Positions 15,238 through 59,600 are shown, counted from the stretch's first letter. The stretch: DNA of 64,000 nt from Bugula neritina (GCA_964035545.1 OZ037772.1:4344233-4408232); one strand, 5' to 3'. The notes: generated by a model from the letters alone, not told the origin. Translations and numbers: made by a program.

Positions 15238-18200
15238 TTAGTATTTTATTGTGTATCTTCTCAGACCGCCATAACCGCATGCTAGAAATACTGTGTCTCT
15301 GTTATACACAGCAATGTCATACACCAGGCCACTCACACCAAGACTTTCTCTGGAAATTGTAAGCACCAGTTGACCTGTAAATAATAGCGACATATTGTAG
15401 CAGTTCTTTGGTGTTTATCGAGAGAAACAGACAGACTGCGTTTAAAGATGGAACTAAGCAGGTTACATGCATGAAGTAAATATTCTAACAGAAAATAGTC
15501 TCCATATACAACTGTATTGACCTTGACCCACAAACTTAGCCTGTGGCTCTTAGCAAGAATGCACCTACATGTCTACTTTTAATACTACTATACTACTGCA
15601 GCTACTCCAACATTATCACACATTAAATACTTGACAAGAACCAACCACAGCCACCTGAGTTCCACCAGCAAACACTGCTCTACCAGCCATCATCAAATTA
15701 CAATAATGGCAGTCGAAAAGTATCAAATTATTTATATTTAAGTTATCTGATGACCAAAACAATATAGCAGCACTAGACTGAAGTCAAACTACAACTCATA
15801 ACTCATGTGTAGCTGGCAGTCTGTACAGTTGTTAGACTGAGCACCTCTAAAATTACTGTAAAACACTTGCATAGTATACTAACTAGACATGCTGATAGGT
15901 GGGTTTGAACCCCTTGCAGCACCAACTCACTCAGCAGTGTGGAGTCCCTATCCTCTTCACTACCAGCTGAACCCTTGGAAAGGAAGACTGAATAGAGAGT
16001 TTACTAAGAGCTCACTGCACACTACACAGAGTACACCTTAAACCTATACAATATAATATACACTTTTACCTGTGCTTACATCCTGCATGTTACTGCAGCT
16101 GGAAATAAACTTATTGTAGGGAGGCAGTATTATTCACTGATATTATTATTAGCCACAAGTCATGTGATGAAGAATATAACATCTAGCCTACTATCAGCAT
16201 GTTACAGTCTTTATTACATAACATTTAGCTAAAAATAACATCACTGACTTGATAAATACTAACAATATCATAATATATCTTAATTTATGAGTGGAAATTG
16301 TTTACAGTTAATTATTATAATATATTATTTACCTTAACATAATTATATATAAAATAACTAAAGTTACTATGTAATAAACACAGTATATACCCTCAAGTGA
16401 GAGGATCAGGAGAGGTCCTTTCCATGTACAGATGTGAATCAGTTCAGATGTTGGATCAAAAGAAATGCCAGTTGGTCGTGAGATGTGAGGAAACTCCCAC
16501 ATTAGAGAGAGAGTTGTGTTCTTCACTTTATATCTTTTCACTGCACCATCTACAGCGTGGTCTCCTATGAGGAGAGTTGAGTCTGGGAGGATGCATACAG
16601 GACGAGGGAACTTCATCTCAGGAAGTGGGAACTTCTGTATTTTATTGTCAACTAGATTACAGACTACCAGCTGTTTCTCACTCCTGTCTACAATATAGAG
16701 TAGTGAGTCGTGCTGAGCTAGTCCATAGTAAGTGAGTCTACTTACTGACTGCTTGTAGAGGGAGCAGTACTGTTCAAAGGAGTTCGGATCAAGAAGTGAG
16801 ACTTCAGCTGTTTTCTCCTCTCTGTTATACCAACTGCCAACCATCACCCCTTCAGGTTAGATTATCTCCCCCCAGCCTATAGTGTTGGTGTTCTTCACTG
16901 AGCTGATAGTATCCAGAGTGTCTTTATTTATTACTTCTACACTTCCTCCTGGTGTCACACACATCAGATGTCCATCAGCTGAGATGTTTACTGTCGAATA
17001 CCAGTCACATACAGGAAGTCCATCAGACTGTAAAGAAGATGGCGGCTGCAGCAGCTTCAGTCCCAGACTGTCTTCACTGTCTGCAACAACAAAATAACAA
17101 TTCTATAACTTGAGAATCTCATCACCTGAGGAGGTGGGAACAGCTTTTCAAACCTAAAAATAAAAGATGTTTTAAATACAAGCAGTCTGTAGTTACTACA
17201 AGTTGCTATGTGATGCACAGGTCTAAGTGAGAATATTGTGTTAATACTGACAGGAGGTAGTCAGCATAACACAGTTTAGCAGCTCACTTATACATCATAA
17301 ACTCTGAAACACTGCAGAAATGTCTCATTATGTTATGAGAGTAGAACAAAACTCAATTCTCTAATAAATACACTCTATCAACTTTTCTAATTATCGGAGG
17401 CTTCTCTTTATTCTCCTATTAAAATATTCAATGAAAACAAATCAAGTGATTACAAGCAGAAAATTATTTATAGTTAGTGTTACTATTTATAGTTAGTGTT
17501 ACTATTTATAGTTAGTGTTACTATTTATAGACTCCACCTACATGTGGGTACCAAGATGGTGTCTGGAAGTACACACTTCTCTATTACACCAATATCTGTA
17601 GCCTTTTCCATCTCCTCACTCATCTCTTTGTAGTCTCTCACAATCCCTGCATCATTGAACTTATCAACTGCATGTTGTACTGTGTCCAGCAGAGACTGTC
17701 TGCCCATTGTCTTACTCAAGGCCAGCTCAATTCTATAATTATCCACTATCTGTGTGCAGCTCTTCAAATATCCATATATTTCTAGCCTCAGGTTTGTAGC
17801 TCTTTTTCTAATCTTTTCTATCTAATAAATAGTAACACAGTGTAACCACATCTGCACCTCACAACCACTACACTTGAAATAAAAGTGACAGATCACCCAC
17901 TAAGAGGACAATGACTGACTCTGGCCACTCTATTCACAGCAGAGAGCTAGTACATCAGGTCACTAGTCTTCGCCTCCTGACACCTGTCAATCACTCACCC
18001 AGCCAACCGCTCTGTGTGAGTGATTGACAGTTGCAGAAGGATGAGTGAGTCATCTGTATTGACAGGTTCTTCTGCACTGAGTAACATGTGATGAATGACT
18101 ACTGCTACATGTACACAGAATAGCAATGCTTTAATGGCCAGTTAATTCTAGTGACAAATGAAATTAATTTCTGATTACAACTGAAAGACCACATGCAAAA

Positions 18201-18459
18201 TTCAATTTCAGACAAACAGAAATACATTAGATGACACCATCATGTCAGCATACCTGAGCATCAGCTACAGCGTTTACTCTGGCAACCATCTTTTTCACTT
18301 CATCTTCTATTTTACTCAGTTCTTTCCAGGCATCCTTTGAGATGTCATTCAACCCTGCAACTTTCTCAGACAGAGTATCTATTCCACCAGTCAGACTTTC
18401 TCGTAACTCACAAGACAAATCACTCAAAGATGCCAAGTCATGGAATGTTACTGTCTCCT
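15238..18459 (-). pseudogene. TRIM-NHL-like paralog B, pseudogene (exons 18459-18254, 17821-17542, 17080-16391, 15374-15238)
   Basis: Exons match exons 4-7 of paralog C in size (206, 280, 690 vs 687, 137) and splice sites. In-frame TAA at 16857-16859 where C has CAA (EII*PEG vs EIIQPEG). RING/B-box exons are absent and a BEL element sits in the upstream intron. Confidence 0.88.
17466..17530. repeat. 19-bp tandem repeat (TATTTATAGTTAGTGTTAC) x ~3.4 in paralog B intron
   Basis: Only a single related unit at ~58914-58940 in paralog C. Confidence 0.85.
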
Positions 18460-18740
18460 CTGTATACATAAAATCACACTATTTATAAAAACATTATTAT
18501 AGATATGACATTGTACTTATTCTACACCTACTACCTGTAACTACAAGTTGATGATGTATCACTATACACATACTGTGTAATTACTAAACAGTTAGACTCT
18601 GTCTTAAGTATTGCTATCTGAGTTGATCATAGCTCAACCTTCCCTAGCAGTGATTCACTCAAAGAAACATTCTAGAAAGATGTCACATGGTTAGCTCATT
18701 ATTCACTGCACTTGGAATAATATAATTGAAAAATTTGAAG

Positions 18741-19075
18741 CAGTGGTTCAAACTTTGGGGAAGGTCCCCTTCGCAGGGAATTTGGGCTTTTTAGGGGTTT
18801 TTACTTCTAAAAATTTCACACAGTTTGTTTACCAGTTTTTTGAGCTCTTGCTTTGTTTTCCAGGTTACATGTATATATGGTATGTATAACTTTAACTCCT
18901 TCATTTTATGTAGTTCATTTATTTATCCACACTACGCTCTACAATCTACGCTTACTCCCACATCAATGTGTCTAATAATCACTCTACCCTAGCCGCTACC
19001 ATGCTACTACGAATGGAGGTTAAAATGTTTGTTGAAAGGTAAAAACCAACCGGAAGTTTTTGCTGTCAGACAAAC
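18741..19075 (+). mobile_element. Old hAT(Charlie)-like fragment; related copies at ~60132-60460 (+) and ~55600-55870 (-), and a terminus at 12139
   Basis: CAGTGGTT(C/T)C-AAC(C/T)T-GGGG type terminus; mutual similarity of the following ~250 bp; no matched TSD found. Confidence 0.45.
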
Positions 19076-19102
19076 TAATCTCCATAAACAATTTACTGCA
19101 TA

Positions 19103-19616
19103 TGTAGTCTTTTGATCATTTTTTGATTATAGTACTCACTACTGCATACCATTCACCCTTATATTCACTTAGCTACTCACATAGCCACAGCTTTTTCTTA
19201 AACCACAAAGAGCTTTGTTTTCATTATTTCAATGCAATGATTTTGCTAACAGAATAGCTGTCAGCTTTTTATAGCTTTTAGCAAAGTTATAGTAGCTAAG
19301 GTGTTTTATGCCTTCATTTCTCTACTGACTGTTGCAGTTCTAACTAGTCATTCTTTATTTGATTAACCTTTCACCATCACAATTTTATATACTTCATTCT
19401 AACTCTCCCCAGGAAGGGTAATAGAGGTGTGTTAAACATTGCTTTGCAACAATTTTGTATTTTTTGTATGTTTCATTTTTCTTTCAATAATGTCTTTATT
19501 GTTAAATCGTATTATTGTATTATTGCAGTTTCACGTTGGTTACTAGTTTGTTAAATAAATATCAACAAAACTCCAGCAGTGCAACCTGTTATCAATAAAC
19601 TGGGGTAGACGTTACA
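19103..19616 (+). repeat. 5' LTR of BEL/Pao element
   Basis: TGTAGT...GTTACA, AATAAA near the 3' end, near-identical to 23488-24001. Confidence 0.95.
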
Positions 19617-19937
19617 GTGAAACTCTACCTACTATCGAAAAGACCAGTTCTGTGCAGTTGCTGCCAGAACCAAGAAGACACAAACCCTGCTGCAACTCAT
19701 TGCCTTGAAGTGGATTACTCAAAGAATCAACCCAGAAAGCCAGTAAAGTTCAAGATTCAGTTCCTGTCTGCACTCAGTTTCAACTATCATTACCAGTACG
19801 TCATTTCGGCAGCTAGCACAACATCAGGCATTAGAACTACACAGACGGAGCCAGCCGTCAACAGACAACTAACCCAAACCTACTCAGTTTCAACTATCAT
19901 CACCATTACACCATTTTGACAGCTAGCACAACATCAC

Positions 19938-20013
19938 GCATCAGAACTACACAGACGCATCAGAACTACACAGACGCATCAGAACTACACAGACGCATCA
20001 GAACTACACAGAC
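19938..20013 (+). repeat. 19-bp tandem repeat (GCATCAGAACTACACAGAC) x4 within a ~110-bp duplication in the BEL 5'UTR
   Basis: Direct reading; ~19772-19880 is repeated at ~19882-20045. Confidence 0.85.
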
Positions 20014-20452
20014 GGAGCCAGAGGTCAACAGACAACTAACTCAAACGATAAGTTGTTCAATGTATCATTGTGGTTTAAATTTACAACACTTGAGTTTCTT
20101 ACCTACTATAATCACTTAAATTAAGTAATAGCACATCAACACTTCTTTTTATAATCTTGATTATGTTAAGCTTAATATAACTAGGCTGAATTAGTGTTCA
20201 TCTTTTGAAATACTGTAACATTAGTACTTGTAATAGTGAAATCACAAAGCTAGTGGATTAATTTGGAACATTATCAAATATTTTGATATTGGCTGACATT
20301 ATTCATCATAATCTGCTCATCAAATAATAGGTTTCTTCAATCATCCCTCATCACCTGTCACTTTTGTCCTGTCCCTGTAGCAAATTAGTGAGCAAATATT
20401 TCACAAAATTTCTTTGTAAATAATAACTAACACTCTCATACCTAAATAAGTG

Positions 20453-21949
20453 ATGTCTAAATCAAACACCTCAAAACCCCATATATTTTCAAGAACAAAA
20501 CTTAATCAGAAAGCTGCACAACTAGACAATGAAATCAAAAACTGTGCCGAGTTACACAAATCTATATTTGCACACTTTGCATCAAAACAGGATATTTCGT
20601 ACGACTCATTGAAAAGTTATAAAAACCAACTATCTCAAGTTAAACACAATTTAGAGGGAACCTATGATGAGTGGCGCCAGATGCTAGGATACCATGAGCC
20701 AGACCTTCGGGTCCGAATTCAAATGGATAGATTGCATTCCGATTGTGAAACATTGATTGGTGATGCCATAGATCGAATGAGTAAACTTTCAGCTAGAACA
20801 AAAGCTGCTGGCTTCGAGCCAGCACAAGAAAATCAGCGCTTCGAGATCTTAGGATCGGCTAGTCACCTTATTAGTTCAAAATCAGCTTCATCCTGTCACT
20901 CATCTTGTGCCAGCTCACAGTCACAGCTCAGATTAATGCAGGTAAAATCTAAAGCTAAAGCAGCCGCACTAAGAAAGAAATTAGAATCTGCACAATTAAT
21001 TTATGAGTTACAACAGCAAGCAAGTCAACTTGCAAACGCTATCAAACAGCAACAGCTGCAGGCTGAAATAGACGCAGCGCAGGCTGAAGAGCAAGTCATA
21101 GCCCAAGCCATTGAAGAAGAGGAAGAAAAAGATAGCTCCTGTCCTCTTCTAAACCAATCACCGTCTATTATACCAGCTGCTCCACCTCAACCAATAATTT
21201 ACAAACCCCAGCCTCCAGAACAAAACATAATACAACCTCACATTATTCCATTGACACCTGTAACATCTACAAACCCTTTCTTACAGTTCATGACGCCTCC
21301 ACCATCCACAAATCCTTTTGTACAGTCTACCAAAATTTCAAGGAATGTTCTCCAGCCTGCTTATCAAAGCCCCATCACTACCTCCAGTCACCAACGGCAA
21401 CCTGCCTTCACACCTGATGATTACGCTGAAAGTATCAACCTAGTTAGGCAACGTCCATTAGAACCGCCCATTTTTTTGAGCAATACACAGAAATACCAAA
21501 AGTTGAAGATGGCTTTCAATGAGGCTTTCAACATGTCAAAAGTTCTCCATGAGTCAAACACGCAAGCAAAGACAAAAACCCAAGACATCATTAAAAAACC
21601 TGTGATACCAAAGAGAACATTTGCTACAAAGAAAACTGAAGTCACTCCACAGCAATCCAAAACACACATTTATGCATGTATATTTTGCAAAATGGACAAT
21701 CACAAAACTGCTGTTTGTGGCAAGCTAAACCTCCTGCCATTTTCAGAAGTTCATGAGTTCATAAGAGACAAACGCCTTTGCTATGCCTGTTTAGATGGTA
21801 ACCACATTGCCAAGGAATGTGGATCTCCTGCTGTTTGCAATATCTGCAAAGAAAGGCACCCAACTTCTCTTCACAAAATGCGTAAATATCCCAGAAACCT
21901 AACGAAATCTAATGATTCAAACAAGCAACCCACCATAAAACCAGATTAA
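20453..21949 (+). CDS. gag: BEL/Pao Gag-like protein (~498 aa)
   Basis: Open ORF with Ser-rich plus coiled-coil N-half and the BEL-type triple zinc knuckle CIFCKMDNHKTAVC / CYACLDGNHIAKEC / CNICKERHPTSLH. Confidence 0.85.
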   Translation: MSKSNTSKPHIFSRTKLNQKAAQLDNEIKNCAELHKSIFAHFASKQDISYDSLKSYKNQLSQVKHNLEGTYDEWRQMLGYHEPDLRVRIQMDRLHSDCETLIGDAIDRMSKLSARTKAAGFEPAQENQRFEILGSASHLISSKSASSCHSSCASSQSQLRLMQVKSKAKAAALRKKLESAQLIYELQQQASQLANAIKQQQLQAEIDAAQAEEQVIAQAIEEEEEKDSSCPLLNQSPSIIPAAPPQPIIYKPQPPEQNIIQPHIIPLTPVTSTNPFLQFMTPPPSTNPFVQSTKISRNVLQPAYQSPITTSSHQRQPAFTPDDYAESINLVRQRPLEPPIFLSNTQKYQKLKMAFNEAFNMSKVLHESNTQAKTKTQDIIKKPVIPKRTFATKKTEVTPQQSKTHIYACIFCKMDNHKTAVCGKLNLLPFSEVHEFIRDKRLCYACLDGNHIAKECGSPAVCNICKERHPTSLHKMRKYPRNLTKSNDSNKQPTIKPD

Positions 21950-22050
21950 CGATAAAACCCAGAAAGACAAAGCTCTCAACAAAAGGCATCAGATAAACAA
22001 CACAAATCACCCTCACCAAACAAACTTAGTCCATTTGTCAAACCGGTCAA

Positions 22051-23460
22051 TTGTGGCTACACAAAATAGCCTCTAACAGTAAGTCTGTCATATCACAGTT
22101 ACCTAGGAGTGAGTGTGCAAACACACTTGACACCCTAGATCTCACCTTTGATTCATTACTTCAAGAACTATCACTATGGGATACTGCGCAAGATCAATTC
22201 ACATTCCAGCATCGCCCATTATCAAACCGGACACTAGAAAAGGTGTCCTATCCACAGTAGCCTTAGTTTTTGAACCCCGATGTCTGATAGCTCCCTTTGT
22301 TCCCCAGGGCAAAACTATTTTACAAGAGACGTGTTCTAATAACCTTGATTAGAATGCATCACTCACAGACTCAGATGGTCTGCATGGAAATCAGACTTGA
22401 CGCCTGTCAATCATATCACCATACCTCGATGTCTCACTCCTCATGACTTTGATTCATAGGAAACTGCTTAACCACACTTTTGCTGACGCCAGTACAGTAG
22501 GCTATAATCACTGCACATACCTTCGACTTGTTAACTCGGCGAGTGCATGTTGCACTGCTTTCAGGTAAAGCCCAAGTCGCATCAATGAGACAAGTTTCAT
22601 GACTCAAACTTCAGGCAGCAGCAAGTGCTGTCAGATTGGTCACAAAATATATCAAAGAACTTGACATTTCAAACATCAGCACACACTTCTATTCTGACTC
22701 CACTGTTGTTCTTGACCATATAAGTAATACTGCTGATCATTTTCACACATGTGTTGCAAAGAGAGTAGAAACAATTTCCCAGGACCGAACCTAATATCTT
22801 ACCCACACAGCCATTGGTGTACGTAAACCCTAAACACGTGGAGGTAAAACAGTCATCAATGTCATTCATTTCACAAACAGTTCACTTTTCACTCGATGGA
22901 TGCTTGGAAAAGTTCTCTGACTAAAACAGAGCAGTCAGAGCAACTGCCACAATTCAAAAGCAATTAAGCAAATATGCCCCGTTCAATTTTCAAAATGCCA
23001 AACAAACTATCCTTCAACTCATTCATGCAGCGTATTTTTTAAATGAGATCGCCGTGCTCAAGGCATCTCAGACTCCGAAAAAAAATCTAGTTGTCTGACA
23101 ATGCTATATCCATTATTAGACTCAAAAGCTCTACTTCCTATTGGTGGGAGACTTCAAGAATGTATCACCCTGTCACATAATAAGAAGCACCCTATCATCT
23201 TACCCTAATCTGCACATGTATATGACCGCTCTACTAATTAGCCATCATCACTCACTTCCTGCTCACCAAGGTCTAAAGCCTACACCAAATCACAATTGAT
23301 CTCATGGTTTTTGACTAGTTAATGCCAAGTCTAACGTCTTGAAATGAGTAGTGAAATCCGTGACACTGCTACTAGGTGTACGTGGGTACCCTAAAGTGAA
23401 GGCCCGTCAGCTCGTCAGGCCATTGAGTAAATTAGTAGTTTTAGTAAAAGCACCAAGTAA
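22051..23460 (+). pseudogene. pol: BEL/Pao pol remnants (RT C-terminus, RNase H, integrase N-terminus and extreme C-terminus)
   Basis: Fragmentary motifs LHKIASNS, LWDTAQDQFTF, LIAPFV..GKTILQ, HTFADASTVGY, IGGRLQ, KHPIILP, HHH...AHQG, RPLSKLVVL, with many stops and frameshifts. No protease, RT core or integrase DDE core seen. Confidence 0.8.
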
Positions 23461-23487
23461 AATTTCATCCTAAATTTTAGGTGGGAG

Positions 23488-24001
23488 TGTAGTGTTTTGA
23501 TCATTTTTTTATTATAGTACTCACTACTGCATACCATTCACCCTTATATTCACTTAGCTACTCACATAGCCACAGCTTTTTCTTAAACCACAAAGAGCTT
23601 TGTTTTCATTATTTCAATGCAATGATTTTGCTAACAGAATAGCTGTCAGCTTTTTATAGCTTTTAGCAAAGTTATAGTAGCTAAGGTGTTTTATGCCTTC
23701 ATTTCTCTACTGACTGTTGCAGTTCTAACTAGTCATTCTTTATTTGATTAACCTTTCACCATCACAATTTTATATACTTCATTCTAACTCTCCCCAGGAA
23801 GGGTAATAGAGGTATGTTAAACATTGCTTTGCAACAATTTTGTATTTTTTGTATGTTTCATTTTTCTTTCAATAATGTCTTTATTGTTAAATCGTATTAT
23901 TGTATTATTGCAGTTTCACGTTGGTTACCAGTTTGTTAAATAAATATCAACAAAACTCCAGCAGTGCAACCTGTTATCAATAAACTGGGGTAGACGTTAC
24001 A
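23488..24001 (+). repeat. 3' LTR of BEL/Pao element
   Basis: Follows the PPT; TG...CA; followed by TSD GCATA. Confidence 0.95.
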
Positions 24002-24494
24002 GCATACCTAGTAGATATATTTGCTGTACTAAAAAATCTGAGCTTAAAATGAATGAGTATAATCATCCGCTCACTGCTTTTAATAGCAGCATCAATACTT
24101 TCAAACTAAACCGAAGTTGTGGGAGACACTGGTTCTTGTCAAACACAAAGTACTTTTTTCTACACTCAATGAATTATTAGGAAAACATCCTGTCCCAGAT
24201 TTTCTTCATAAATATAAATAAAACTTACAATTTTTATTTGAAAGGGGGAGAAAATTAAAAAAAAACAGGGGAATGGTATGAAGAAGGTGGGACACCACTG
24301 AGTTATAGCTATATGCCTATACTATGTTTTCAAGGAAACAGACACTTGAAGGGTGAAATATACTAAATATTCAACATAACAGTGAGAATATAAACTCCTG
24401 CACTATCCACTTCTGTCCCACACAAACCTTAATGCTGACAAACTGACTTCCTCTTTTACTGTTACATAACTCACTTTATTAATAAAATAATAAA

Positions 24495-25146
24495 TAACAG
24501 CAAAAATAAAATGGTGACGCTGTTGCATTTTGTTAACGGGTGTTCACACATTGCCGTAAAAGTACAATGCGTGACGTTGAGCTTTGACCAATCATAATAA
24601 AGCCAACTCTTGTCTGCGGTGATTTGAACGCATTTGGATATTATTTACAAATTATTCGCAACATTCTTTTCAAAAGATGTTATATAAATGCTATTTACTA
24701 AATAAAAGCAATTACATGAAAAGAATCTTTCTTTAAATATATTTTTTTTTAAAATAATTGTGCAAACTAATTTAAATAATGAATATTTAAGCCGTCCAAA
24801 TCATTTTTAAGTTTTTGGTTTGCTTGATTTTGTGATTAGGGAAAGCTAGATTTTTAAGCTGAGTTTAATTCAAACAAGCCGCATAAAGATTTTTTTAATC
24901 TTTTAAAACTTTTGAATTGGTTAAATTAAATCAAAAATAAGCGATTAAAATAAACTAGCGAAATTGTTCTTTAAATTTTAGTACCAGATCAACTCTACCC
25001 AATAGGAGCCCGCCGTTATTTTTTGAATCAAGCACTGCTTGATCAACTCCGCAACGTATACCGGAGTACGATTTAGCCCGGATGTTAACAAAAATTGCTA
25101 AAATTTGCTGTTCTGGCGTACGGTACGGTAAGTGTGAATGAGGGGA
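24495..25146 (-). mobile_element. End-truncated copy of the CCCCCTGTTCACAC MITE family
   Basis: Reverse-complement match to 36398-37040 along its length; lacks the outer ~33 bp of one end and starts at TAACAG. Confidence 0.85.
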
Positions 25147-25540
25147 TAGTCAGCTACAACAAGCCGAGCTCACAGCTTTAACTGTCTAACAAAGGCTGTA
25201 TTGTTTCGATTGTAATCACTGAATAGGTTTTTGCTGGTGACTCAAACTCCTTATACAATAAATGTGAAGCAATGTTGTGTGCTTCAGTGAACACTTTTAT
25301 TCTATATACTTCTATTGAACACCACTAATTAGTGTTTCCAATATGTAGAGGAGAAGTGAAACATGAATACCAGTGAGTTATGTAATACTTCTATGAACAA
25401 ACAGCAGAATTGGATTCAGCTGCTTATCCCCCCATTTAGAGTTAGGTATTAGGCTGTATAATATAGTAAAATGACTTTCATAAACAAACAGCACTCACTT
25501 TCAGCGGCTTAATACTGTATTTAGGCTGGAAGTGTTTTAA

Positions 25541-37832: not shown

Positions 37833-37848
37833 CTTGCGTATAACAGTC

Positions 37849-43445: not shown

Positions 43446-43690
43446 AGGGCTTGAAGTGTAAACATGTGTTAGTAGTGACTGATGTTATAGCGTAATTTGA
43501 TGTAATGTTTGTTTTGTATTGTATTGTGAATAATAAAAGTAATTACTCGACAGCTACCCTAGTAATTGCTAGAAGAATAGCCAACTAAATACGCAAGTAG
43601 AAAACTTAAGCATAGTAATTGCACGAATTACTACAATATAGCAATGTGAGCCAAGCCTTCTACGGTGAGTATCAGCAGCAAGATGGCTAA

Positions 43691-44238
43691 CCCCCTTTTC
43701 ACACATTGCAGCACCGTACGCCGCAACAGCAAATATCCGCCATCTGTTTTCATATCCGGGCTGAATCGTACAATAGAAATGTTATTTACTGAATAAAAGC
43801 AATTACATAAAAAGAATCTCTCTTTTAAATTTATTCGTTTTTAAAATATTTGTGCAAACTAATTTAAATAATGAATAGTCAAGCCGTCCAAATCAATTTT
43901 AATTTTTTTGTTAGCGTGCTTTTGTGATTAGAAAAGGCTATATTTTGAGCTGAGTTTAATTCAAACAAGCCATATAAAAGTGTTTTAATTCTTTAAAACT
44001 TTTGAATTTATTTAAATTAAATAAAAAAAAAAGGAATTAAAATAAACTAACGGAAATGTTCTTTAAATTTTAGTACCAGATCAACTCTAGCCAATTGGAG
44101 CCCGCCGGGAGTTTTTTAATCAAGCACTGCTTGATCAACGCCGCAGCGTATACCGGGGTACAATTCAGCTCGGATGTTACCAAAGATGGCGGAAATTTGG
44201 AGTTGCGGCGTACGGTGCGGCAATGTGTGAACAGGGGG
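43691..44238 (-). mobile_element. MITE derivative with the long 'left' terminus at both ends
   Basis: 43691-43770 matches 36398-36478 directly, and 43775-44238 matches 36398-36860 in reverse complement. Confidence 0.85.
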
Positions 44239-48768: not shown

Positions 48769-51105
48769 ATAAGTTGTAGTATTCGGGTTAGCTAGGATTA
48801 GTGTATTGGCATGGGTTGCTTGGTGGTGAGGATAACTCCAGCTTCTGTCTTACTCTGTGAGGAGTTAAAACTATGATCCAGAACACATCTGCCTTGGATG
48901 GTGTTCAGGGTGCCTAGGTGGGTAGAGTCCCTTAACCTGGGTGGTGCTAAAGAGTCCTTGTCGTCTGGCTGGCCGTATTCAGGAGTGTTGCTGTATAGGA
49001 GAGGTCAGCTATATTTATATTATACTGAGCACTCTCTTTGACCAATAGTATACTACCACTGCACACTGGATACTCCGCAGGTTATCAAACTCTGGCAAAG
49101 GTTTGTACGAGTTTATCAAATTCCAATTTGTAATTGCATTCAATTCAGAATTAAGGAATTATATTTACTCATTCAAAAACGAATGTGATTAATTTAGCCA
49201 TAATTTTATGTTCATTCTGTTTGATTGTCAGAATACTGATTTTATAATATTGTAGTGAATTTTGCCAGTTCACTATTATTATGTGTGGGTTGACTTAGAC
49301 AAAGCCACTGCACCAGGTTGTTTACAATAAGATACACTTCATTATTTACACAAATATAAGAAGGTTATTTACTGCTAGCATGAATAGAAAACTGTTACAT
49401 AATTAGTGAGCTTTAATACACAACTACTCTAAATGAAGTCCCAAGCTGCTCTGCCGGCTAGCTACTCAGCGCACTGCAACTACGAGTAGCTAGCTCCACC
49501 TGCTATTAATTAGTGTGACTGTCCTGATTGGTGGTTACTAGTGGTGCCACTGCTGTCCATAGTTACACTCCGACAGTGTCGAACTCACAAGATAATAAAC
49601 AATATAGAGTAAACCTTTTCGATTAATATAATAAGAATTGCACTACTAAAATCTATCACACTCGCCACACCTATCGAAAAGTACACTCTACGATTGATGC
49701 ACATAATCTTAAAAAAAATAATAAAAGGAAATAAAAGTAAAATAAAACAAAAGATCAAAACAACCAGGAATGAGAGAACACAAAATATGTATTCAAAATG
49801 ATGTCCATGTTGTAACACGATCGATCCGGGTCAGTCACAGGGTAGGGGGGGGGGGGGGAGTCTCTCACCAAATGATGTAGGGTAGCATGAACTTAGTGAG
49901 AAGGAGATGTACTGCTTCACACTCGTCTAGTCGAAGCCAAGCGATGGGGGTCGAGGAGTCCCCAGAAGAATCAAGCGTGGCAAAGGAGTCTCTCCCAAAG
50001 GGGGGAGAGAAGGAAAAGGGGGTTGGAGAGTACGAAGGAATCTCCCCAAAGGGGGAAGATGGAGGGGGGTTGACTGGTCTCTTCACTACCAACGTCTACC
50101 TCGTCACCGTCAAATTCCCAAAAGGAGGAAAGGAAAGACTTCTTCTTCTTAACTTCTACTTTTACTTTTTAACTTCATGCAGGAACCTTTAATATTACTT
50201 CTTCTTCTTCTTATTTTATACTGTTTCATTATTAGGATGTAGCCACAGGAGAGAAAGGGAAGGAGCTACTCTGCCTATACCGGAACGTGATCACCAGGGG
50301 AAGAGAGGGAAGAACTACTGTGTCAGTTGTCTCTGGCACTTCTGTTATGACGACCATCAGCACCGCTGTCATGTCGCTACAGGAATCGAGTCAAGCAGCC
50401 AGCATCTAGTCGAAAGTTGAGATGAATGATGTGACTGCGCTATGCCAGGAGAAGGAATTGGCCCCGCCATTCCAGTCTCACCTGCAACAGAATGCCAGCA
50501 ACTGTTGAAGGGGTTTGCACCTGTCAGTACGACACCTCGACTGAGTCTCGCAATCACTAACCACTGATTAATAATTAAATCATGTGATCGACCGCCCCAC
50601 TCAAGTCGTCAGTGAATCACCTGACTTGGGAAACCAACTTTATCGTTATGATAAAGCGAGACTGATTTAGGCTACTAGCTTGAATTCTATTTAGTTAATA
50701 GAATTATACTAGTAGACTTACCATAAGACAGCCCTGACTTTTAATCTGCTGCCCACTTAGGCTACGTAGTAGGCCAGCCTGCCAAGTACATGCGTGCACG
50801 TTGGCAGTTGAATCAGAAAAGAACGCTTTTCGCAGTGAAAGTGATTGTATAATACCCCTTTCACTAGCGAGCTGACTTCGCTCTTTTCTTACCCCCGGTG
50901 GTGTTTTGTATCACACCACTGGGGTAGGCAACTCACAATTGCGTCTCCTTATACCTTGGAAATGCAACTCTCAATTGCTCGTCCCCCCAGATTTCTTTTA
51001 TGATAGCTGATGGATGTTTTTCCACTGCATCACACAAGAAATCTTTTAAATAAGATGGAGGCGCCCTAGTGCGTTGCCTACGCTCCAACTGCACTGGGGA
51101 ATTTG

Positions 51106-52734
51106 CTACGACTGGTGACTCTTCCACCACGGGTGGTGTCGCCAGTACGGGGGGTCCACCAGTACGGGTGGTCCCCCCCCAGCTGCCTCTTCCTCATGAT
51201 TTTGAGGAATTTCCATCTCATCCGGGACGATGGACCTGTCGACCGGCTCCACAGGTGGTGGGGCCGGCTCTGACAGGTCTTCAGGTGTGTCGACCTCCTC
51301 TTCCTTGGGTGGAGGAGGCTGGGGCTGGTCGGCCGACGCATCAGCCGCCCCGTCCTGGTCTGGCAGTATCTCCTCAATCTCTCGATACGCCATGGGTCGC
51401 CCCCTCATAGGAGGGCGCTTAGCTGGCTCTAAGAGAGGAGGTGCTTGACCTGCCGCATCAGGACTTGCCCAGTGAGGTTTTAGCCGTGCCTCGTTCTGGA
51501 TCGACACTTGTCCAGACCGTTCCACTTTGTATGTATAGTTTGGCATTACCTCAATTACGCAGTAGGGACCTACGAACTTTGGCTGCAACTTGGCTGCCTG
51601 TCCGCGCCTGCGGCGATGACTGGTCATCCAGACCCAGTCCCCAACCTTGTATAAAGGTGGGTCGTCAGAGTCACCACTCCTGACCTGCCACTGCTGCTCA
51701 CGTAGCACCTCGTGAGCCGTCCCCATGCGTTTTACGAGCTTGTCCACGTAGTCGTGGACATTGCTCTCGGGAGTCGGAACATGATAGGTTACGTGCTCAG
51801 GAACCCTTGTTTCTCTCCCCAGCATGAGAAAATTAGGGGTCTCCAGTGTACTGGAGTGAGGGGTACTGCGGTACGCTCGCATGATCTGCGGCAACACCAA
51901 GTCCCACTCTTCCTGGCTCCTACCGATAAGCAGGCTTCTCAGAGAGTCCCCTAGCATTCGGTTGTTCCGCTCCACAACCCCGTTCCCTTGTGGGTGATAC
52001 GGGGTCGTCCGACTCTGGTTTACCCCCCACACTTTACAGAGATCGCTCATAAGTTGCGACTGAAACTGGGCGCCTTGGTCAGAGTGTATCTGCTCCGGTA
52101 AGCCGAAATAGCAGAACACCTGCTGATCCAAGGCTCTGGCCACCGAGGGGGCCGACGCATCTGGAATAGCCAGTGCATCAGCCCACCGCGTGAAATGGTC
52201 AGTTAATACCAGTATCCAGTTATTACCTCTCGCTGATGTGGGCATGGGGCTTACCAGATCGACAGCAACCACCTGCCACGGACGACCGGCATGGAGGCGA
52301 CGCCTCCCTGCGGTCTCAGTGGGGCGGCCATGCTTGCTAGCTTGGCACACCTCGCACTTCCGCACCCGGAGTCGGACATCCCGGGTCATACCGGGCCAAA
52401 ACCACTGGAGTTGAAGACACCTGATCACCCGGCTAGCTCCTGCGTGAGCTTGCTTATGGGTGTCCCAGATCAACTCCCGCCTCAGAGCTGACGGGCAAAC
52501 TACCCTCTCTCGTTCACTGCGATTGGTGCCGGCTGCCAACGTGATCGTTAGCAGCCCATCGCTGTTGAACTTGAGGGAGTCCCAGCGGTCGCAGAAGTAC
52601 TTAAACTCAGTACTCCTCACTCGCTGTTCAGCCTCACTCGGCCGCCGTCTCTCCTTCTTGGCCCGGACTAGGTCAGCTACCACTCCTGATAGCGTAGACT
52701 GGAGCCGACATAGCTCCCTGACGTTCCGAAGCAA
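51106..52734 (-). CDS. Gypsy integrase (HHCC, DDE, GPY/F); true C-terminus continues in frame 50933-51130
   Basis: THKQAH...CEVC; VAVDLV, HSDQGAQF, GNGVVERNN; KFVGPY; homologous to 39991-40600 of element 1. Confidence 0.9.
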   Translation of the reverse strand: MLRNVRELCRLQSTLSGVVADLVRAKKERRRPSEAEQRVRSTEFKYFCDRWDSLKFNSDGLLTITLAAGTNRSERERVVCPSALRRELIWDTHKQAHAGASRVIRCLQLQWFWPGMTRDVRLRVRKCEVCQASKHGRPTETAGRRRLHAGRPWQVVAVDLVSPMPTSARGNNWILVLTDHFTRWADALAIPDASAPSVARALDQQVFCYFGLPEQIHSDQGAQFQSQLMSDLCKVWGVNQSRTTPYHPQGNGVVERNNRMLGDSLRSLLIGRSQEEWDLVLPQIMRAYRSTPHSSTLETPNFLMLGRETRVPEHVTYHVPTPESNVHDYVDKLVKRMGTAHEVLREQQWQVRSGDSDDPPLYKVGDWVWMTSHRRRRGQAAKLQPKFVGPYCVIEVMPNYTYKVERSGQVSIQNEARLKPHWASPDAAGQAPPLLEPAKRPPMRGRPMAYREIEEILPDQDGAADASADQPQPPPPKEEEVDTPEDLSEPAPPPVEPVDRSIVPDEMEIPQNHEEEAAGGGPPVLVDPPYWRHHPWWKSHQS

Positions 52735-52797
52735 CGTGGGGTTTGCGTGAAGGTTGTTAACAGCTTTGTTGGGTGATTCGGACAGGAGTTGCCCTTA

Positions 52798-53411
52798 CAC
52801 GACCCGTCCGCCAACGTGCCGTGCTCCCCGTCATATGGTTCTAGGCTAGCCCTGTCCCTGGCACTGAGAGTGTCGAAGAGACGTCGACTCAGTAGATTTG
52901 TGGTGCACCCAGTATCCAACAGGAATGTGGCAGCTTTATCAGCAATTTTGCCGGGGAGGAAATAGCTGCTTCCATATGGCTGAGCGCTCACTGAGCGGTT
53001 TGTCTCTTGAGGCGACACCTCATGTGCATGGAGTTGGGGATGCACCTGTGCTTTTCGGTTGCGAGGGGGTCGTCGACGTTGCATGGGCGGGCAGGGTACG
53101 TCTCGGTCTCGCTCACACACGGGCGGCCGAGTGAATTCTCGGACTGATGCTCGTGTGGGCAATCGAGGAAAATCCCTGTTGTGCTCCCATTCGTCGTTCA
53201 CTCCCTCATCAAACAAACCTTCAAAGCGGTTTTTGAGTGCCCAAGCCGGAGGTATTGGTGGGCCTTGCGGCCGACTCACTCTCCTTGGAGCTTGCCACTC
53301 TGGCGAAGGCAGCCTCCTCACTCGGTGGGGTGGGGGCCGTAGCCTCTGCCTTGGAGGGTTAAACTGGGGCCCACGGTAGGCGGAAGTTACCGTGGGCCGC
53401 CGCTGTTTAAC
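52798..53411 (-). pseudogene. pol N-terminus / truncated aspartic protease in -1 frame to gag
   Basis: GSSYFLPGKIA...FLLDTGCTTNLL...GTLADGSC; homology to the element 1 protease stops abruptly at ~52798 (deletion junction to the integrase region). Confidence 0.85.
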
Positions 53412-54258
53412 CGCCTCCCACTGCCGCGGGGGCAACTTCGTAGGAAGTGCCCACCACTACCACAGCCCCAGCATACGGGGCCGCGCCTGTCGTCGACAGC
53501 TACCGACGACCTCTTGGGTCTCTCGGCTGTCGCCTGCTGGCGCAGTTGCCTGATCTCGGCTAGCAGTTCTCGAATCAAGCTCGTGGTTAAGCTAGATTCG
53601 TCTGCTGCTGCCGCTGCGACCTGTACAGCTGTCTTCGCTGGCGACGTCGACACGTCGTCTGCCCCGACCTGCTGTACTGTCGCACCAGGTCGACTTGCAC
53701 TGTCGGCTTGAAAATAGGCATTCCCAAGCTTTAGAGCTCTCGCCATAGTCTCAACTTCGGCCACCAGCAGATGCTGTTTCAGACCGAGGTTGTTAATAGA
53801 CTGGAGGAATGCATCCAGTGCTAGGCTCTGTCGACTGTCGGCAGGCAAGTCGCTGTAGGCAACTTGTGCCAGTCGTTCGACTACGGTAGCGTGCTCTCGC
53901 AGATTGGTCTTAGGATTTCTTTTAAGACTCTGCAGTTGCACGCGAGCATCTCGAGCGGTTAATCCAAACCTAGCTCGTAGTGCTTCAAATATGTCACCGA
54001 CATTCTGGCTTATAATCCCATAGGGTTTAGCCGGCCCTGTCAGACACAACCGCAGCTGGATCAGAGTAACCCTGTTCGGCCATCCGCAGATGTCCGCCAC
54101 ATCACTAAACTCAGTGATGAATTGCTCCACATCTTCTTCCCCTGAGAAGATGGGAGCCGCAAGTGGTACCTGTCCATAGGCAGCGCTGGGCCGCCTATGT
54201 GATCCTCCTTTATTGCTGCTGGCTCCTGTCGGGGCGCGTCGACGACTTCGTCGGCCAT
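53387..54258 (-). pseudogene. gag: Gypsy Gag with a 1-bp deletion near 54158
   Basis: MADEVV...DRYHL/APIFSGEEDVEQFI aligns to element 1 DRYRLKAPTFTGEEAVEQFI only with a frameshift; CCHC knuckle CWGCGSGGHFLRSC. Confidence 0.85.
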
Positions 54259-54294
54259 TTTACTCCCTGGCTAGGGGCATTTGTACTAAGTGGA

Positions 54295-54312
54295 ATCCCA
54301 CCGCTGCCACCA
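54295..54312 (-). promoter_or_regulatory. Primer-binding site, tRNA-Leu
   Basis: The plus strand reads ATCCCACCGCTGCCACCA, as I recall the 3' end of eukaryotic tRNA-Leu including CCA; 1 nt from the LTR. Confidence 0.85.
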
Positions 54313-56471
54313 GTGTAGTGAATTTTGCCAGTTCACTATCATTATGTGTGGGTTAACTTAGACAAAGCCACTGCACCAGGTTGTTTACGATAAGATACAC
54401 TTTAATATTTACACAAATATAAGAAGGTTATTTACAGCTAGCATGAATAGAAAACTGTTACATAATTAGTGAGCTTTAATACACAACTACTCTAAATGAA
54501 GTCCCAAGCTGCTCTGCCGGCTAGCTACTCAGCGCACTGCAACTACGAGTAGCTAGCTCCACCTGCTATTAATTAGTGTGACTGTCCTGATTGGTGGTCA
54601 CTAATGGTACCACTGCTGTCCATAGTTACACTCCGACAGTGTCGAACTCACAAGATAATAAACAATATAGAGTAAACCTTTTCGATTATTATAATAAGAA
54701 TTGCACTACTAAAATCTATCACAATATGTAGTATATAATTTGTAGAGGAAGTTACTTGTTAAATTTTTTCGAACTCAAACCCCAAAACTCTTCACCCTAA
54801 GCCCCCAGCCCTTGAACACCCACCCCAAACTCCAGAACCCCAAGTACAAACCCAAAATCCTCACCTCAAAACCTTTTTTCAAACTCTAAACCCCCCCAAA
54901 TTGAAAACACATGCCAATTTTTTTCTACTTTTCCATTTGTGCCATTATTACCTGTACCATTTCTACTGTACACTAACCCACAATACATCAACTGGAGAAA
55001 ACTTCCTATCACCCTCCATGGCTGAATTGTGAACCAACTCAATAAAATCCTCCTGCAATTCCTCTGAAAACTTGTTAACAAACTGTTGCAATGGGTCACA
55101 TGTCAAGTTGAGAATCTAGCTCTTTCTTTGTCGGAGGTAGCGCAGAGAAATGCTGTTAAAAGTCGGTTTAATGTTCAGTGAAATGCCTAGAAATTTTTTT
55201 TAAAAACGATATGGAACAGTTGGTGTTCGGAAAAATGGCAGATAATAATGACGCAAATGAAAAATTAAGTAAAATTGGCACATTTTCAATATTAACATTG
55301 TAGATTTGAATTGACGGTTAAGCATTCAGGATGAGGAATTCGGGGGTTTAAGTTTGGGAAAATTTAATACCAGTGTGCATTTTTACCTGTGCCATTTTTA
55401 CCTAAAATTGGAACAGGTTCTTCTCCTGTAAAAGTTCATTTAGTGAGGGGAAAAACACCATGTTTTTAATAGACTTTTAAAACATGGCTGCTGCTATGAA
55501 AAGCAATAATATGATGATTGCACTCTTGAATTTTAAGGTTCAGATTATTTAGTGTACCAAATATATTCATTAGGTATGTAGTATACAGTTCATAGAGATT
55601 GATTTGCATGGCTGCTAAAAGTTGGCCTGTTGTTTTTTGCATCTTTTAGACCTCCATTCGAAGTAGCCAAGAGTACAGTCAGGGTATAAGTAAACTGAGA
55701 GTGCAGAATATGGTTGGGTTAAATAAATGAACTAAAATGAAGGTTTATAGATATGCATATATACATGCAACTTGCAAGAGTTCAAAAACCGTCAACAAAG
55801 TGCGTAAGTTTTTCAAAATCCAAATTCCCCCCCCTAAAATGTCCAAATTCCCCCAGGTTGGGAACTACTGATTTATCAGATTCCTGATTGCATGACAAGA
55901 AACAATTTGATTAGCTACTCATTGCTGTTGTACACAGCAATGAAATGTATATTAGTTTGAATGGTTGAAATGAATTTGCTTAGCCATGTTGGAAATATTA
56001 CTGGCACCTGCATGTCAATTCAGTAAATAAATTCTCCCACAGACAAGTCAATTACGCAGTTATACTGCTCCAGTAAAGATTATTTTTAGTAACCAAACTC
56101 AACTTGAACTAAAGCTAATGAGGCATGAAAACAGACTATATTTTCACTAACAAATAAACATTATCATATAGTAAAAAGGCAATGCATGTTTGATACAGTA
56201 AAATACCTCATATATAACTATAATTACTGATAATTAACATAATATAATAATGCATATAATAAGCAGTGCAAGTTCTGTTGAATATATAATAATATACAGA
56301 AGCATAATTACAGTGTAAATGAAAAACACAATATAATATACCTGACACTACCATAAGTGGGTGTATTGATGAATTGTATTGAATATAATTATGTTGATGA
56401 CAAATATTATCCATTTTATCTCTCAGTACCTCACTGGGCTGATTATTGGTAAACTGTAGCTGCAGGTAAGT

Positions 56472-56608
56472 TTAGTATTTTATTGTGTATCTCCTCAGTC
56501 CACCATATCCACATGCTAGAAACACTGTGTCTCTGTTATACACAGCAATGTCATACACCCAACCACTCACACCAAGACTTTCTCCAGGAACTGTAAGCAC
56601 AAGTTGAC
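56472..56608 (-). CDS. Paralog C exon 7 (last propeller blade, stop)
   Basis: ttacag|GT CAA...; GQLVLTVPGESLGVSGWVYDIAVYNRDTVFLACGYGGLRRYTIKY*. Confidence 0.88.
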
Positions 56609-59600
56609 CTGTAAATAATAGCATCATATTGTATCAGTTGGTGTGCACTGAGAGGAACAAAACGACTAATGTTGAAGATGGAACTATAAGTTGGTGTGTA
56701 TTGAGAGGTTCCTTTACAAAACGAAATAGGCAGAATTATAGAAAGTTCTACCAGTGAGTATTGAATAATTCACTGAGCTGCTCTACTGTTTACTTCATAC
56801 TAAATGACAACATGGAGAAACTCAGCATGGAGACTTAGTGCTCAGCTAATATAATTATAAATATTCACAGGAGAGAAGATATATAATGTAAGTATTAAAT
56901 GCATGGAGTAAATATTCAAACAGAGCAGAAAATAGTGTCTCATTATACAACTGTATTGACCTTGAACCACAAACTTAGCTTGTGGCTCTTAGCAAGAACA
57001 CGCCCACACGTCTGCTCCTAATACTACTACTACTTCAGCTACTCCAACATTATCACATATTAAATACTTGACAAGAACCAACCACAGCCACCTGAGTCCC
57101 ACCAGCAAACACTGCTCTACCAGCCATCATCAAATTACAATAGTCTCAGTAATGGCAGTCAAAAAGTATCAAATTATTTATATTTAAATTATCTGATGAC
57201 TAAAACAACAGCAGCACTAGACTGAAGTCAAACTACAACTCATAACTCATGTGTAGCTGGCAGTCTGTACAGTTGTTAGACTGAGCATCTCTAAAATTAC
57301 TGTAAAACACTTGCATAGTATATACTAACTAGACATGCTGATAGGTGGGTTTGAACCCCTTGTGCAGCACCAACTTACTTAGCAGTATGGAGTCCCTATC
57401 CTCTACTCTACCAGGTGAAACCTTGGAAAGGAAGACTGAATAGAGAGTTTACTAAGAGCTCACTGCACACTATAACACAGCGTACACCTTAAACCTATAC
57501 AGTATAATACACAGTTTTACCTGTGCTTACATCCTGCATGTTACTGCAGCTGGAAATAAAGTTATTGTAGGGAGGCAGTATTATTCACTAATATCATTAT
57601 TAGCTACAAGTCATGTGATGAAGCATATAACATCTACTATCAGCATGTTACAGTCTTTATTACATAACTTTTAGCTAAAAATAACATCAGTGACTTGATA
57701 AATACTAACAATATCATCATAATATTATATCTTATGAGTGGAAGTTGTTTACTGTTGGTTATTAAAATATATTATTTACTGCAACATAATTATATATATA
57801 AAATAACTATAAACTTACTATAATTAACACAGTATTTACCTTCAAGTGAGAGGATGAAGAGAGGTCCTCTCCATGTACAGATGTGAATCAGTTCAGATGT
57901 TGGATCAAAGGAAATACCAGTTGGATATGAGATGTGAGAAAACTCCCACATTAGAGTGAGAGTTGTGTTCTCCACTTTATATCTTCTCACTGCACCATCT
58001 ACAGTGAAGTCTCCTATAAGGAGAGTTGAGTCTGGGAGGATGCATACAGAGTGAGGGTACTTCATCTCAGGAAGTGGGAACTTCTGTATTTTATTGTCAA
58101 CTAGGTTACATACTACCAGCTGTTTCTGTTCACTGTCTACAATATAGAGCAGTGAGTCGTGCTGAGCTATTCTATAGTAAGTGGGTACATCTACTAACTG
58201 CTTGTAGAGAGTACGAGACTTCTCAAAGGAGTTCGGATCAAGAAGTGAGACTTCAGCTGTTTTCTCTTCTCCATTACACCAACTGCCAACCATCACCCCT
58301 TCAGGTTGGATTATCTCCCACCACCATGTAGTGTTGGTGTCCTTCATTGAGCTGATAGTATCCAGAGTGTCTCTATTTATTACTTCTACACCTTCCCGTG
58401 TCCAACACATAAGATGTCCATCAGCTGAGATGTTTACTGTCCCACATCCCCCACGTACAGGAAGTCCATCAGACTGGAGAGAAGATGGTGGCTGCAGCAG
58501 CTTCAGTCCCAGACTGTCTTTACTGTCTGCAACAACAAAATAACAATTCTATAACTTAAGAATCTCATCACCTGAGGAGGTGGGGAACAGCTTTTCAAAC
58601 TTAAAATAAAAATATATTTTAAATACAAGCAGTCTGTAGTTACTACAAGTTGCTACAGGATGCACAGGTCTAAGTGAGAATATTTTGTTAATACTAACAG
58701 CAGGTAGTCAGCATAACACAGTTTATAGCAGCTCAGTTATACATCATAAACTCTGAAACACTGCAGAAATGTCTCATAATGTGAGAGTAGAACAAAACTC
58801 AATTCTCTAATAAATAAACTCTATCAACTTTTCTAAAATTTCATCAGAGGCTTCTTTTCGTTCTCCTATTAAAATATTCAGTGAAAAAAATTCAACTAAT
58901 TACAAGCAGAAAGTTATTTGTAGTTAGGGAACTACTATTTAATATACACTCCACCTACATGTTGGTACCAAGATGCTGTCTGGAAGTACACACTTCTCTA
59001 TTACACCAATATCTGTAGCCTTCTCCATCTTCTCACTCATCTCTTTGTAGTCTCTCACAATGCCTGCATCATTGAACTTATCAACTACATGTTGTACTGT
59101 GTCCAGCAGAGACTGTCTGCCCATTGTCTTACTCAAGGCTAGCTCTATTCTATAATTATCCACTATCTGTGTGCAGCTCTTCAAATATCCATATATTTCT
59201 AGCCTCAGGTTTGTAGCTCTCTTTCTAATATTTTCTATCTAATAAATAATAACACAGTGTAACCACATCTGAACCTCACAACCTCTGCACTTGAAATGAA
59301 AGTGACAGATCACCCACTGAGTGGACAATGACTCAGTCACGTGACACTCTATACACAGCAGAGAGCTAGTACATCACGTGACTAGTCTCCTCCTCCTGAC
59401 ACCTGCCAATCACTCACCTAGTTAACCTCTCTGTATGAGTGATTGACAGTAGCAGAAGGATGAGTGAGTCATCTGTATTGACAGGTTCCTCTGCACTGAG
59501 TCACATGTGATAAATGGCTACTGCTACTTGTACACAGAATGATAATGCTTTAATGGCCAGTTAATTCTAGTGGCAAATGAAATTCATTTCTATTTACAAC

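Follow-up and report, generated by a model that had tools for sequence, protein, structure and literature searches.

The stretch of DNA studied here, called the window below, is 64,000 nucleotides long and comes from Bugula neritina, at C8:4344233-4408232 (C2, C3 and C8 are contig labels) in an AT-rich animal genome of 216 Mb and 321 contigs. It holds two members of a TRIM-like gene family, one intact (paralog C) and one broken (paralog B). By comparing C with its relatives elsewhere in the genome, we show that about two dozen residues on one face of the propeller domain change around ten times faster than neutral DNA. The part of the protein that carries the RING, the B-box and the coiled coil is probably held constant by purifying selection, with a propeller scaffold that is nearly invariant, and as a whole the pattern is probably best explained by a diversified recognition repertoire of cytosolic TRIM-type E3 ligases, in which binding, E3 activity and the nature of the ligand are putative.

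Across the genome, at least 124 sequences match the propeller exon. Among them, contig C8 carries 58 full-length copies with 74-86% identity, spread from 4 kb to 4.40 Mb, of which 55 have open frames; 10 further copies are found on C3 and 8 on C2, with more distant ones elsewhere. The comparative analysis covers 51 of the roughly 100 copies, 50 of them at further loci beyond the window. Paralog C is a complete seven-exon gene on the minus strand with a product of 620 residues, all introns GT-AG and no internal stop. The exon structure is common to all copies, and 50 of them keep a segment of the exon 7 type some 1 kb downstream of their propeller exon. Two pairs of neighbouring genes on C8 (642918/2026804 and 687303/2071458) are near-identical twins, both at an offset of 1.384 Mb; one pair has 15 exon changes and the other has 1, with at most 3 intron differences in both. 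The shared offset of these two sister pairs indicates that the array also grew, recently, by duplication of multi-gene blocks.

The evidence for selection comes from rates across this family. Among 45 intact C8 copies, the Nei-Gojobori pairwise ratio of nonsynonymous to synonymous divergence (dN/dS) is neither uniform over the domains nor everywhere at or below 1: it is 0.06 in the RING exon, 0.09 and 0.28 in the B-box1 and B-box2 exons, 0.44 and 0.53 in the two coiled-coil exons, 1.26 in the propeller exon and 0.73 in the last exon. In the propeller alignment, 105 of 233 columns are invariant and 29 have an entropy of at least 1 bit; we call the latter hypervariable. The dN at these 29 codons is 0.53, as against a framework dS of 0.05 and an intron divergence of 0.042-0.050. 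We then refer the rates to introns in 18 phylogenetically independent sister pairs taken from one concatenated tree. The exon-wide proportion of nonsynonymous differences (pN) in the propeller averages 0.055 versus 0.028 for the proportion of differences (p) in introns, and exceeds the latter in 17 of 18 pairs; relative to the intron rate, pN is 9.8-fold at hypervariable codons and 0.33-fold in the coiled-coil exons. A per-codon test against the intron rate (18 pairs, Bonferroni correction for 280 tests) gives 23 significant codons, 20 in the propeller exon and three in the last exon; no such codon lies in a RING, B-box or coiled-coil exon. Nearly all differences within the youngest pairs (intron p 0.0006-0.005) are at hypervariable codons, and two of these pairs have a single propeller-exon difference each, at a hypervariable codon.

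The changes at these sites are also of an unusual kind. Tryptophan is enriched 14-fold at the hypervariable sites, arginine 5-fold and glutamate about 2-fold. The changes there comprise 192 transversions and 109 transitions, mostly at codon positions 1 and 2, versus 140 and 193 in the framework, so that the transition/transversion ratio is 0.57 at hypervariable sites and 1.38 in the framework. CpG hypermutability as the source of the toggling among Trp, Arg, Gly and Gln is rejected, with CpG transitions making up only 13 of the 301 differences (4%). A mutational hot-spot is thus a weak explanation, given the richness in transversions and the small CpG share.

The position of the fast sites is seen on a predicted structure. 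An AlphaFold2 model of C's propeller exon, made with 31 aligned homologues, has a mean predicted local distance difference test score (pLDDT) of 86 and a predicted template modelling score (pTM) of 0.82, and its 19 strands form blades 1-5; strand 5D and blade 6 are assigned to exon 7 by motif. In this model, 20 of the 47 residues in D-A and B-C loops are hypervariable, versus none of the 42 in A-B and C-D loops (Fisher p = 2.6e-7). Since the D-A and B-C loops share one face of a four-stranded blade, the hypervariable residues are predicted to cluster on one face, rather than being scattered over the structure. Of the other hypervariable columns, eight fall in strands, six of these at ends adjoining D-A or B-C loops, and one is a gap in C. 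The same loop-restricted variability is seen in the alignment of the last exon, which carries blade 6.

As for the domain content, one transcript order of RING, B-box-like fingers, putative coiled coil and propeller is found, in which exons 2-7 are linked by GT-AG joints and exons 1 and 2 by loose contig ends. The RING of exon 1 matches Pfam PF13445 (zf-RING_UBOX) with 31.3 bits against a cut-off of 25.2, and the full C3HC4 spacing is present in the product. Exon 2 is cysteine-rich with no Pfam match, and exon 3 matches PF00643 (zf-B_box) with E = 3.6e-4 and 21.1 bits, under the cut-off of 24.1. The coiled-coil exons have weak Pfam matches only, to coiled-coil families (SlyX, DASH_Dad2; E about 0.02-0.06). 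The propeller matches PF01436 (NHL) with E = 0.057 and 13.9 bits, which does not reach the curated threshold of 20. No Pfam match to SPRY/PRY (B30.2) is found in any exon of C at E up to 1, and none to NACHT in the exons of C. With Foldseek, the model matches many propellers in the PDB, with WD40 and NHL domains ranking similarly and NHL not singled out; the matches include Mei-P26 (7nyq), Thin (6xg7) and Pizza6, and the NHL domains of the first two have a query-normalised template modelling score (TM-score) of 0.61. The structural look-alikes in the Atlas are generic bacterial six-bladed propellers of the NHL/SGL/Vgb type. Because Foldseek matches many propellers and a sequence search of solved structures gives a single match, the designed NHL-type Pizza6 with E = 0.01, the domain is named NHL-like and not NHL. 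By eye, the blades of one protein share only a loose common motif. A word search for homologues finds only metagenomic open reading frames (ORFs) of exon size; in the metagenome homologues P0030, P0009 and P0032 the 2D-3A loop, around residues 112-118 of C, varies in length, one homologue having an Asp-rich insertion of about 40 residues and others being longer by 20-30 residues there.

Transcription of the family, and its splicing as modelled, are seen in RNA contigs from four runs of four studies (the RNA label of the runs is a guess), aligned to 56400-62390 at 90% identity or more. They are 100-1000 times deeper over exon bins than over intron bins, and they cross the GT-AG joints given with the exons in Table 1.

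Paralog B is a 5'-truncated pseudogene; other pseudogenised copies of the family lie at C8:3797593 and C8:2339741. A BLAST self-comparison of the window shows 15084-19108 together with 23997-24442 to be a copy of 56315-60934 that has diverged to 82-88% identity. The homology to C ends at 24442, beyond which B adjoins a dispersed repeat. The RING, B-box1 and B-box2 exons of B are not found, as tblastn of the C peptides against the window matches C only, and it is from this and the end of homology that the truncation follows. The dispersed repeat at this end may mark the event that truncated B.

A preliminary description of this window, made by eye, had drawn attention to the pair B and C, with about 44 amino-acid differences in about 229 positions of the propeller and about 10 in about 162 of the coiled coil. 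Our protein-guided codon alignment (B 17080-16391 versus C 58526-57840) gives 44 of 233 columns, four of them gaps, and 6/69 plus 4/93, that is 10/162, for the two coiled-coil exons; every patch that had been listed is recovered (CDWYS/RGGCG, VTPGGS/WTREG-, IGWG/TWWW, YNR/CNG, QYCS/KSRT, SVSRL/LVDVP, GL/RI, RSE/SEQ, FPRP/YPHS, HA/FT and SRP/SYP). The outer limits it gave are true exon ends, the propeller exon of B having its 3' end at 16391 and that of C its 5' end at 58526, in agreement with the RNA splice joints. The clustering in patches is beyond chance, with 21 of the 44 B-C differences falling on the 29 columns at which 45 other intact paralogs are hypervariable, and the mean family entropy is 1.13 bit at columns that differ between B and C versus 0.22 bit elsewhere. 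At the nucleotide level, B and C have diverged by 11-13% over the propeller exon; immediately upstream of it, the intron differs by about 5%, with 3-8% downstream and 2-5% over the coiled-coil exons. Three features had been missed: the in-frame TAA of B; its 4.9-kb long terminal repeat (LTR) element together with the absence of its RING and B-box exons; and a further propeller exon on the 3' side. B and C lie at the base of a star-like radiation of C8 copies in a tree built from the gene's 3' half. The coupling of a conserved effector to a positively selected binding surface, as then proposed, is supported at the level of the family, with a putative binding role, and does not hold for B, which is truncated, leaving C as the only one of the two that couples effector to propeller.

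Exchange among the paralogs, for which a check had also been proposed, is detected in several ways. In the four-gamete test, 34% of informative site pairs fail, with a minimum number of events (Rm) of at least 31, and the p value of the pairwise homoplasy index (PHI) test is 0.024. Of the differences within the five youngest pairs, 62 of 71 in exons and 13 of 15 in introns show both of their states among unrelated paralogs, and multi-nucleotide patches recur in unrelated copies. Two copies on C2, L048 (C2:322806-332016) and L049 (C2:276118-285328), are chimeric with respect to the C8 type: their part from RING to coiled coil is 73-84% identical to it, their flanking intron 96% and their propeller exon 91%, with a sharp identity boundary in the 3' part of the intron that precedes the propeller exon. 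These chimeras show that the propeller exon moves as a cassette. In addition, when the RING and B-box1 exons are compared in 12-17 copies (L031-L050), their synonymous divergence is 0.10-0.14, versus 0.03-0.04 in the B-box2 and coiled-coil exons, so that parts of the gene have different exchange histories. Conversion of the whole exon in a single event is unlikely in the young pairs: L050 and L040 have 6 framework differences versus about 21 for a random pair, and 21 hypervariable differences versus about 25. The per-base difference of exon relative to intron is 1.6 times in a random pair and about 10 times in young pairs; exchange by itself is therefore insufficient for the rates, and new combinations at the loop sites appear to be retained preferentially.

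Put together, C would be an intact, transcribed member, and B a dead one, of a TRIM-type E3 ubiquitin ligase family with about 100 cytosolic members, whose array extends over 4.4 Mb of a single contig, two other contigs carrying satellite clusters. Its members would have a RING, two B-box-like fingers, a coiled coil and a six-bladed NHL-like beta-propeller, in that order, and on one face of the propeller two to four residues in each D-A or B-C loop, in all six blades, would be hypervariable and rich in Trp and Arg. This face may be the ligand-binding surface, each paralog having its own specificity, and binding would bring the RING and coiled-coil module to the target for ubiquitination or signalling, as in TRIM5alpha and the fish finTRIMs. 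The diversity would arise from point substitution and from short-tract exchange of propeller segments and be kept by diversifying selection, with ligands that are most likely non-self and intracellular, such as viruses, transposon products or microbial proteins. We infer from this a recognition role, whether immune, anti-transposon or in allorecognition; the label of an innate-immune or anti-transposon sensor, used in the preliminary description, is likewise a suggestion from the pattern. A bolder version, which we put forward tentatively, is a combinatorial germline repertoire, in which twelve hypervariable loop cassettes on one propeller face are continually reassorted by short-tract gene conversion, both within the set of about 100 paralogs and across subfamilies located on different chromosomes. 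If true, it would be a form of invertebrate intracellular recognition coupled to E3 ligases and a previously undescribed way to build a diversified receptor family. A still bolder version would have exchange or choice of copies take place somatically as well.

The serious alternative, though an unlikely one, is that the family consists of diversified RNA-binding regulators. The top face would then read motifs of endogenous or transposon RNA to repress them, as in Brat, LIN-41/TRIM71 and Mei-P26, making the family a repertoire for post-transcriptional silencing instead of one that senses pathogen proteins. The TRIM-NHL architecture, the NHL domains of Mei-P26 and Thin among the Foldseek matches and the 5-fold enrichment of Arg are in accordance with this, as are the abundance of young LTR elements in the window and the array and the direct RNA binding described for the Brat NHL domain in the available text of PMC4015489. 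However, the 14-fold enrichment of Trp and the roughly 2-fold enrichment of Glu make a mix that is more like protein-binding hot spots than a uniformly basic RNA surface, and the NHL profile match is under its threshold.

Less likely again is a self/non-self specificity, as in allorecognition, gamete compatibility or symbiont sorting, under balancing or negative frequency-dependent selection and not pathogen pressure. The pattern resembles that of the WD40 propellers of the fungal het-d and het-e NOD-like receptors (NLRs), which control incompatibility (PMC12222747, PMC4986451, as far as their accessible text goes), and symbiont, marine and biofilm metagenome runs contain related sequences. 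However, no signal peptide or membrane segment is visible in the 620-residue product, which makes an extracellular recognition role unlikely, and intracellular incompatibility would need cell fusion.

It is improbable, slightly more so than the foregoing, that the pattern is non-adaptive, that is, that unconstrained loops combine with ectopic gene conversion, which would spread loop variants and homogenise scaffold and introns and so mimic dN > dS. Exchange is indeed pervasive, in introns too (13 of 15 young-pair intron differences are shared, and PHI and Rm agree), and homogenisation would lower intron and synonymous divergence and inflate the ratios. However, unconstrained sites can reach but not exceed the neutral rate, and the hypervariable pN is 9.8 times that of introns in the same sister pairs; if conversion tracts covered the exon, its hypervariable codons would be homogenised too. 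Loops of the bottom face are just as exposed, yet 0 of their 42 residues are hypervariable; the transition/transversion ratio shifts from 1.38 to 0.57, and frames stay open in 55 of the 58 C8 copies. That the contrast between B and C is merely decay of pseudogene B, as its premature TAA, LTR insertion, absent 5' exons and B-C propeller dN/dS of 0.66 might suggest, is very improbable and had been doubted in the preliminary description: the family comparison contradicts it, since the same positions vary among intact, expressed paralogs (21 of the 44 differences lie on the 29 hypervariable columns), the coiled-coil exons of B are 94% identical to those of C, and at framework codons pN is 0.049 versus a proportion of synonymous differences (pS) of 0.13, so that B still bears the imprint of purifying selection.

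Several points weigh against a diversified recognition repertoire. The immune role is suggested by analogy, and the canonical TRIM-NHL proteins bind RNA for developmental regulation and not for defence. The assignment of the propeller to NHL is under the Pfam cut-off, the structure model covers exon 6 without the last exon, and the faces are assigned from the DSSP strand order and not from coordinates. As the RNA contigs were accepted at 90% identity or more, they show expression of the family and not of C itself. The hypervariable set was picked by amino-acid entropy, which inflates its dN/dS; for this reason we also use tests without a choice of sites, and the exon-wide, sister-pair and intron-referenced tests are free of this bias. 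Inference from trees is unreliable under recombination, and a single concatenated tree supplied the sister pairs. In the youngest pairs the rate excess is about 25-70 times the intron rate, more than point mutation and selection easily give, so that part of the signal must come from exchange between paralogs. For the pair B and C itself, the propeller dN/dS is 0.66 (dN 0.106, dS 0.16, intron divergence 0.08-0.12), and the support for selection thus comes from the family and not from this pair. The two are also not closest relatives, C being 86% identical to many copies and 82% to B in the propeller exon.

The coordinates of the features are collected in Table 1. The LTR retrotransposon in B is 4.9 kb long with a target-site duplication GCATA, and the empty site is visible in C at about 60490. 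Its sole long ORF, at 20450-21949 (+), encodes a gag-like protein of 499 residues with zinc knuckles; with no pol ORF of at least 100 residues found in it, the element may be non-autonomous. ORF fragments of reverse transcriptase and integrase are seen at 46097-47851. In addition, the window has an orphan fragment at 208-348 (+), on the strand opposite to that of B and C, with 67% protein identity to the family's last exon (blade 6), and no propeller exon is found near it within the window. About 9.7 kb before the window begins lies a paralog that is more distant (69% identical). An intronless ORF of 320 residues at 2011-2973 (-) resembles, by eye, a seven-helix membrane receptor.

Table 1. 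Features of the window, in window coordinates
Feature	Position	Strand	Remarks
C exon 1: start codon and C3HC4 RING finger	62911-63092	-	zf-RING_UBOX match; GT donor at 62910; RNA contigs ending at 61702 run on into the end of exon 1
C exon 2: linker and Cys-rich, B-box1-like segment	61516-61696	-	RNA joint 61516/61318 in all four runs
C exon 3: B-box2-like zinc finger	61129-61318	-	RNA joints 61516/61318, 61129/59880
C exon 4: first coiled-coil exon	59675-59880	-	RNA joints 61129/59880, 59675/59238
C exon 5: second coiled-coil exon	58959-59238	-	RNA joints 59675/59238, 58959/58526
C exon 6: linker and propeller blades 1-5 (to strand 5C)	57840-58526	-	RNA joints 58959/58526, 57840/56608; AlphaFold2 model
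C exon 7: strand 5D, blade 6, TAA stop	56472-56608	-	RNA joint 57840/56608 skipping 1231 bases, GT..AG ends
20 fast codons in C exon 6 (top coordinates)	58449, 58443, 58404, 58398, 58395, 58326, 58320, 58281, 58272, 58269, 58200, 58134, 58131, 58059, 58053, 58008, 58002, 57927, 57873, 57870	-	
3 fast codons in C exon 7 (start coordinates)	56564, 56561, 56555	-	
B first coiled-coil exon	18254-18459	-	Alignment to C, 6/69 amino-acid differences
B second coiled-coil exon	17542-17821	-	Alignment to C, 4/93 amino-acid differences
B propeller exon	16391-17080	-	In-frame TAA at 16859-16857 where other copies have Gln; AG/GT splice dinucleotides kept
B last propeller exon (blade 6) and stop	15238-15374	-	tblastn, 91% identity to C exon 7
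Last B stretch homologous to C	24008-24442	-	Self-BLAST; matches C 60479-60934, inside the B-box2 to coiled-coil intron
LTR retrotransposon in B intron upstream of first coiled-coil exon	19103-24007		515-bp LTRs, 99.2% identical, TG..CA ends
Two Gypsy-like LTR elements between B and C	37464-43635, 49251-54723	+, -	GC 51-58%; gag, protease and integrase ORFs; terminal repeats 95-97.6% identical
Dispersed repeat, about 650 bp	24495-25148, 36396-37038, 43773-44231, 34299-34947		72-87% identity between copies

It is of interest to compare this family with known systems. In the finTRIM (ftr) genes of fish and in primate TRIM5alpha and TRIM22, a conserved part made up of RING, B-box plus coiled coil is joined to a diversified recognition domain, according to the accessible portions of PMC2657112 and PMC3845644. 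The likeness, as far as these portions describe the two systems, is in the large lineage-specific family, the tandem duplication, the scaffold under purifying selection and the positive selection in surface loops of the recognition domain. Unlike the B30.2/SPRY domain of finTRIM and TRIM5, the domain here is predicted to be a six-bladed NHL-like propeller with 12 loops on one face, and the propeller cassette is exchanged between subfamilies; some finTRIMs and TRIM5 have a documented antiviral function, while here it is suggested by analogy. With the canonical TRIM-NHL proteins (TRIM2, TRIM3, TRIM32, TRIM71/LIN-41, Brat, Mei-P26 and Thin), the family would share the order of RING, B-box, then coiled coil and a six-bladed propeller, and in the available text on Brat (PMC4015489) the ligand-binding face is the top face. 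However, those are single-copy and slowly evolving developmental regulators, whereas here there are about 100 copies with propeller dN/dS > 1, a sub-threshold Pfam match to NHL and no filamin domain.

Outside the TRIM proteins, the het-d, het-e and nwd NLRs of Podospora have near-identical WD40, ANK or TPR repeats with few hypervariable positions on the binding face, which are under diversifying selection and reshuffled, as the accessible parts of PMC12222747 and PMC4986451 report. A conserved propeller scaffold, few hypervariable binding-face positions and recombination or conversion are what our family has in common with them, so far as those parts go. In the fungal NLRs, the exchange is between repeats within one gene and the effector is NACHT or HET, while here it is between paralogous genes, the six blades of one protein are unlike, and a RING ligase is the effector. 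In marine invertebrates such as the oyster, tandem expansions of candidate recognition and signalling genes are known that are large and lineage-specific (PMC4346834). Like these innate-immune expansions, ours is a large tandem family in a marine invertebrate; a propeller-type TRIM array with a mapped hypervariable face is not described in the literature searched, the coverage of which is incomplete.

Diversified TRIM ligases are known as antiviral restriction factors of vertebrates, in which the SPRY domain is the variable one, and hypervariable propellers are known from fungal incompatibility NLRs. The array studied here unites both ideas, as a RING ligase with a wholly hypervariable propeller top face, in about 100 genes of a small animal genome of 216 Mb. 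If the loops set specificity, it would be a model for how recognition repertoires are built and renewed in animals without adaptive immunity, for the interplay of gene conversion and selection, and for non-RNA ligands of NHL-type propellers. The array is a natural library of loop variants on a fixed scaffold, and as such it is useful for the mapping of specificity.

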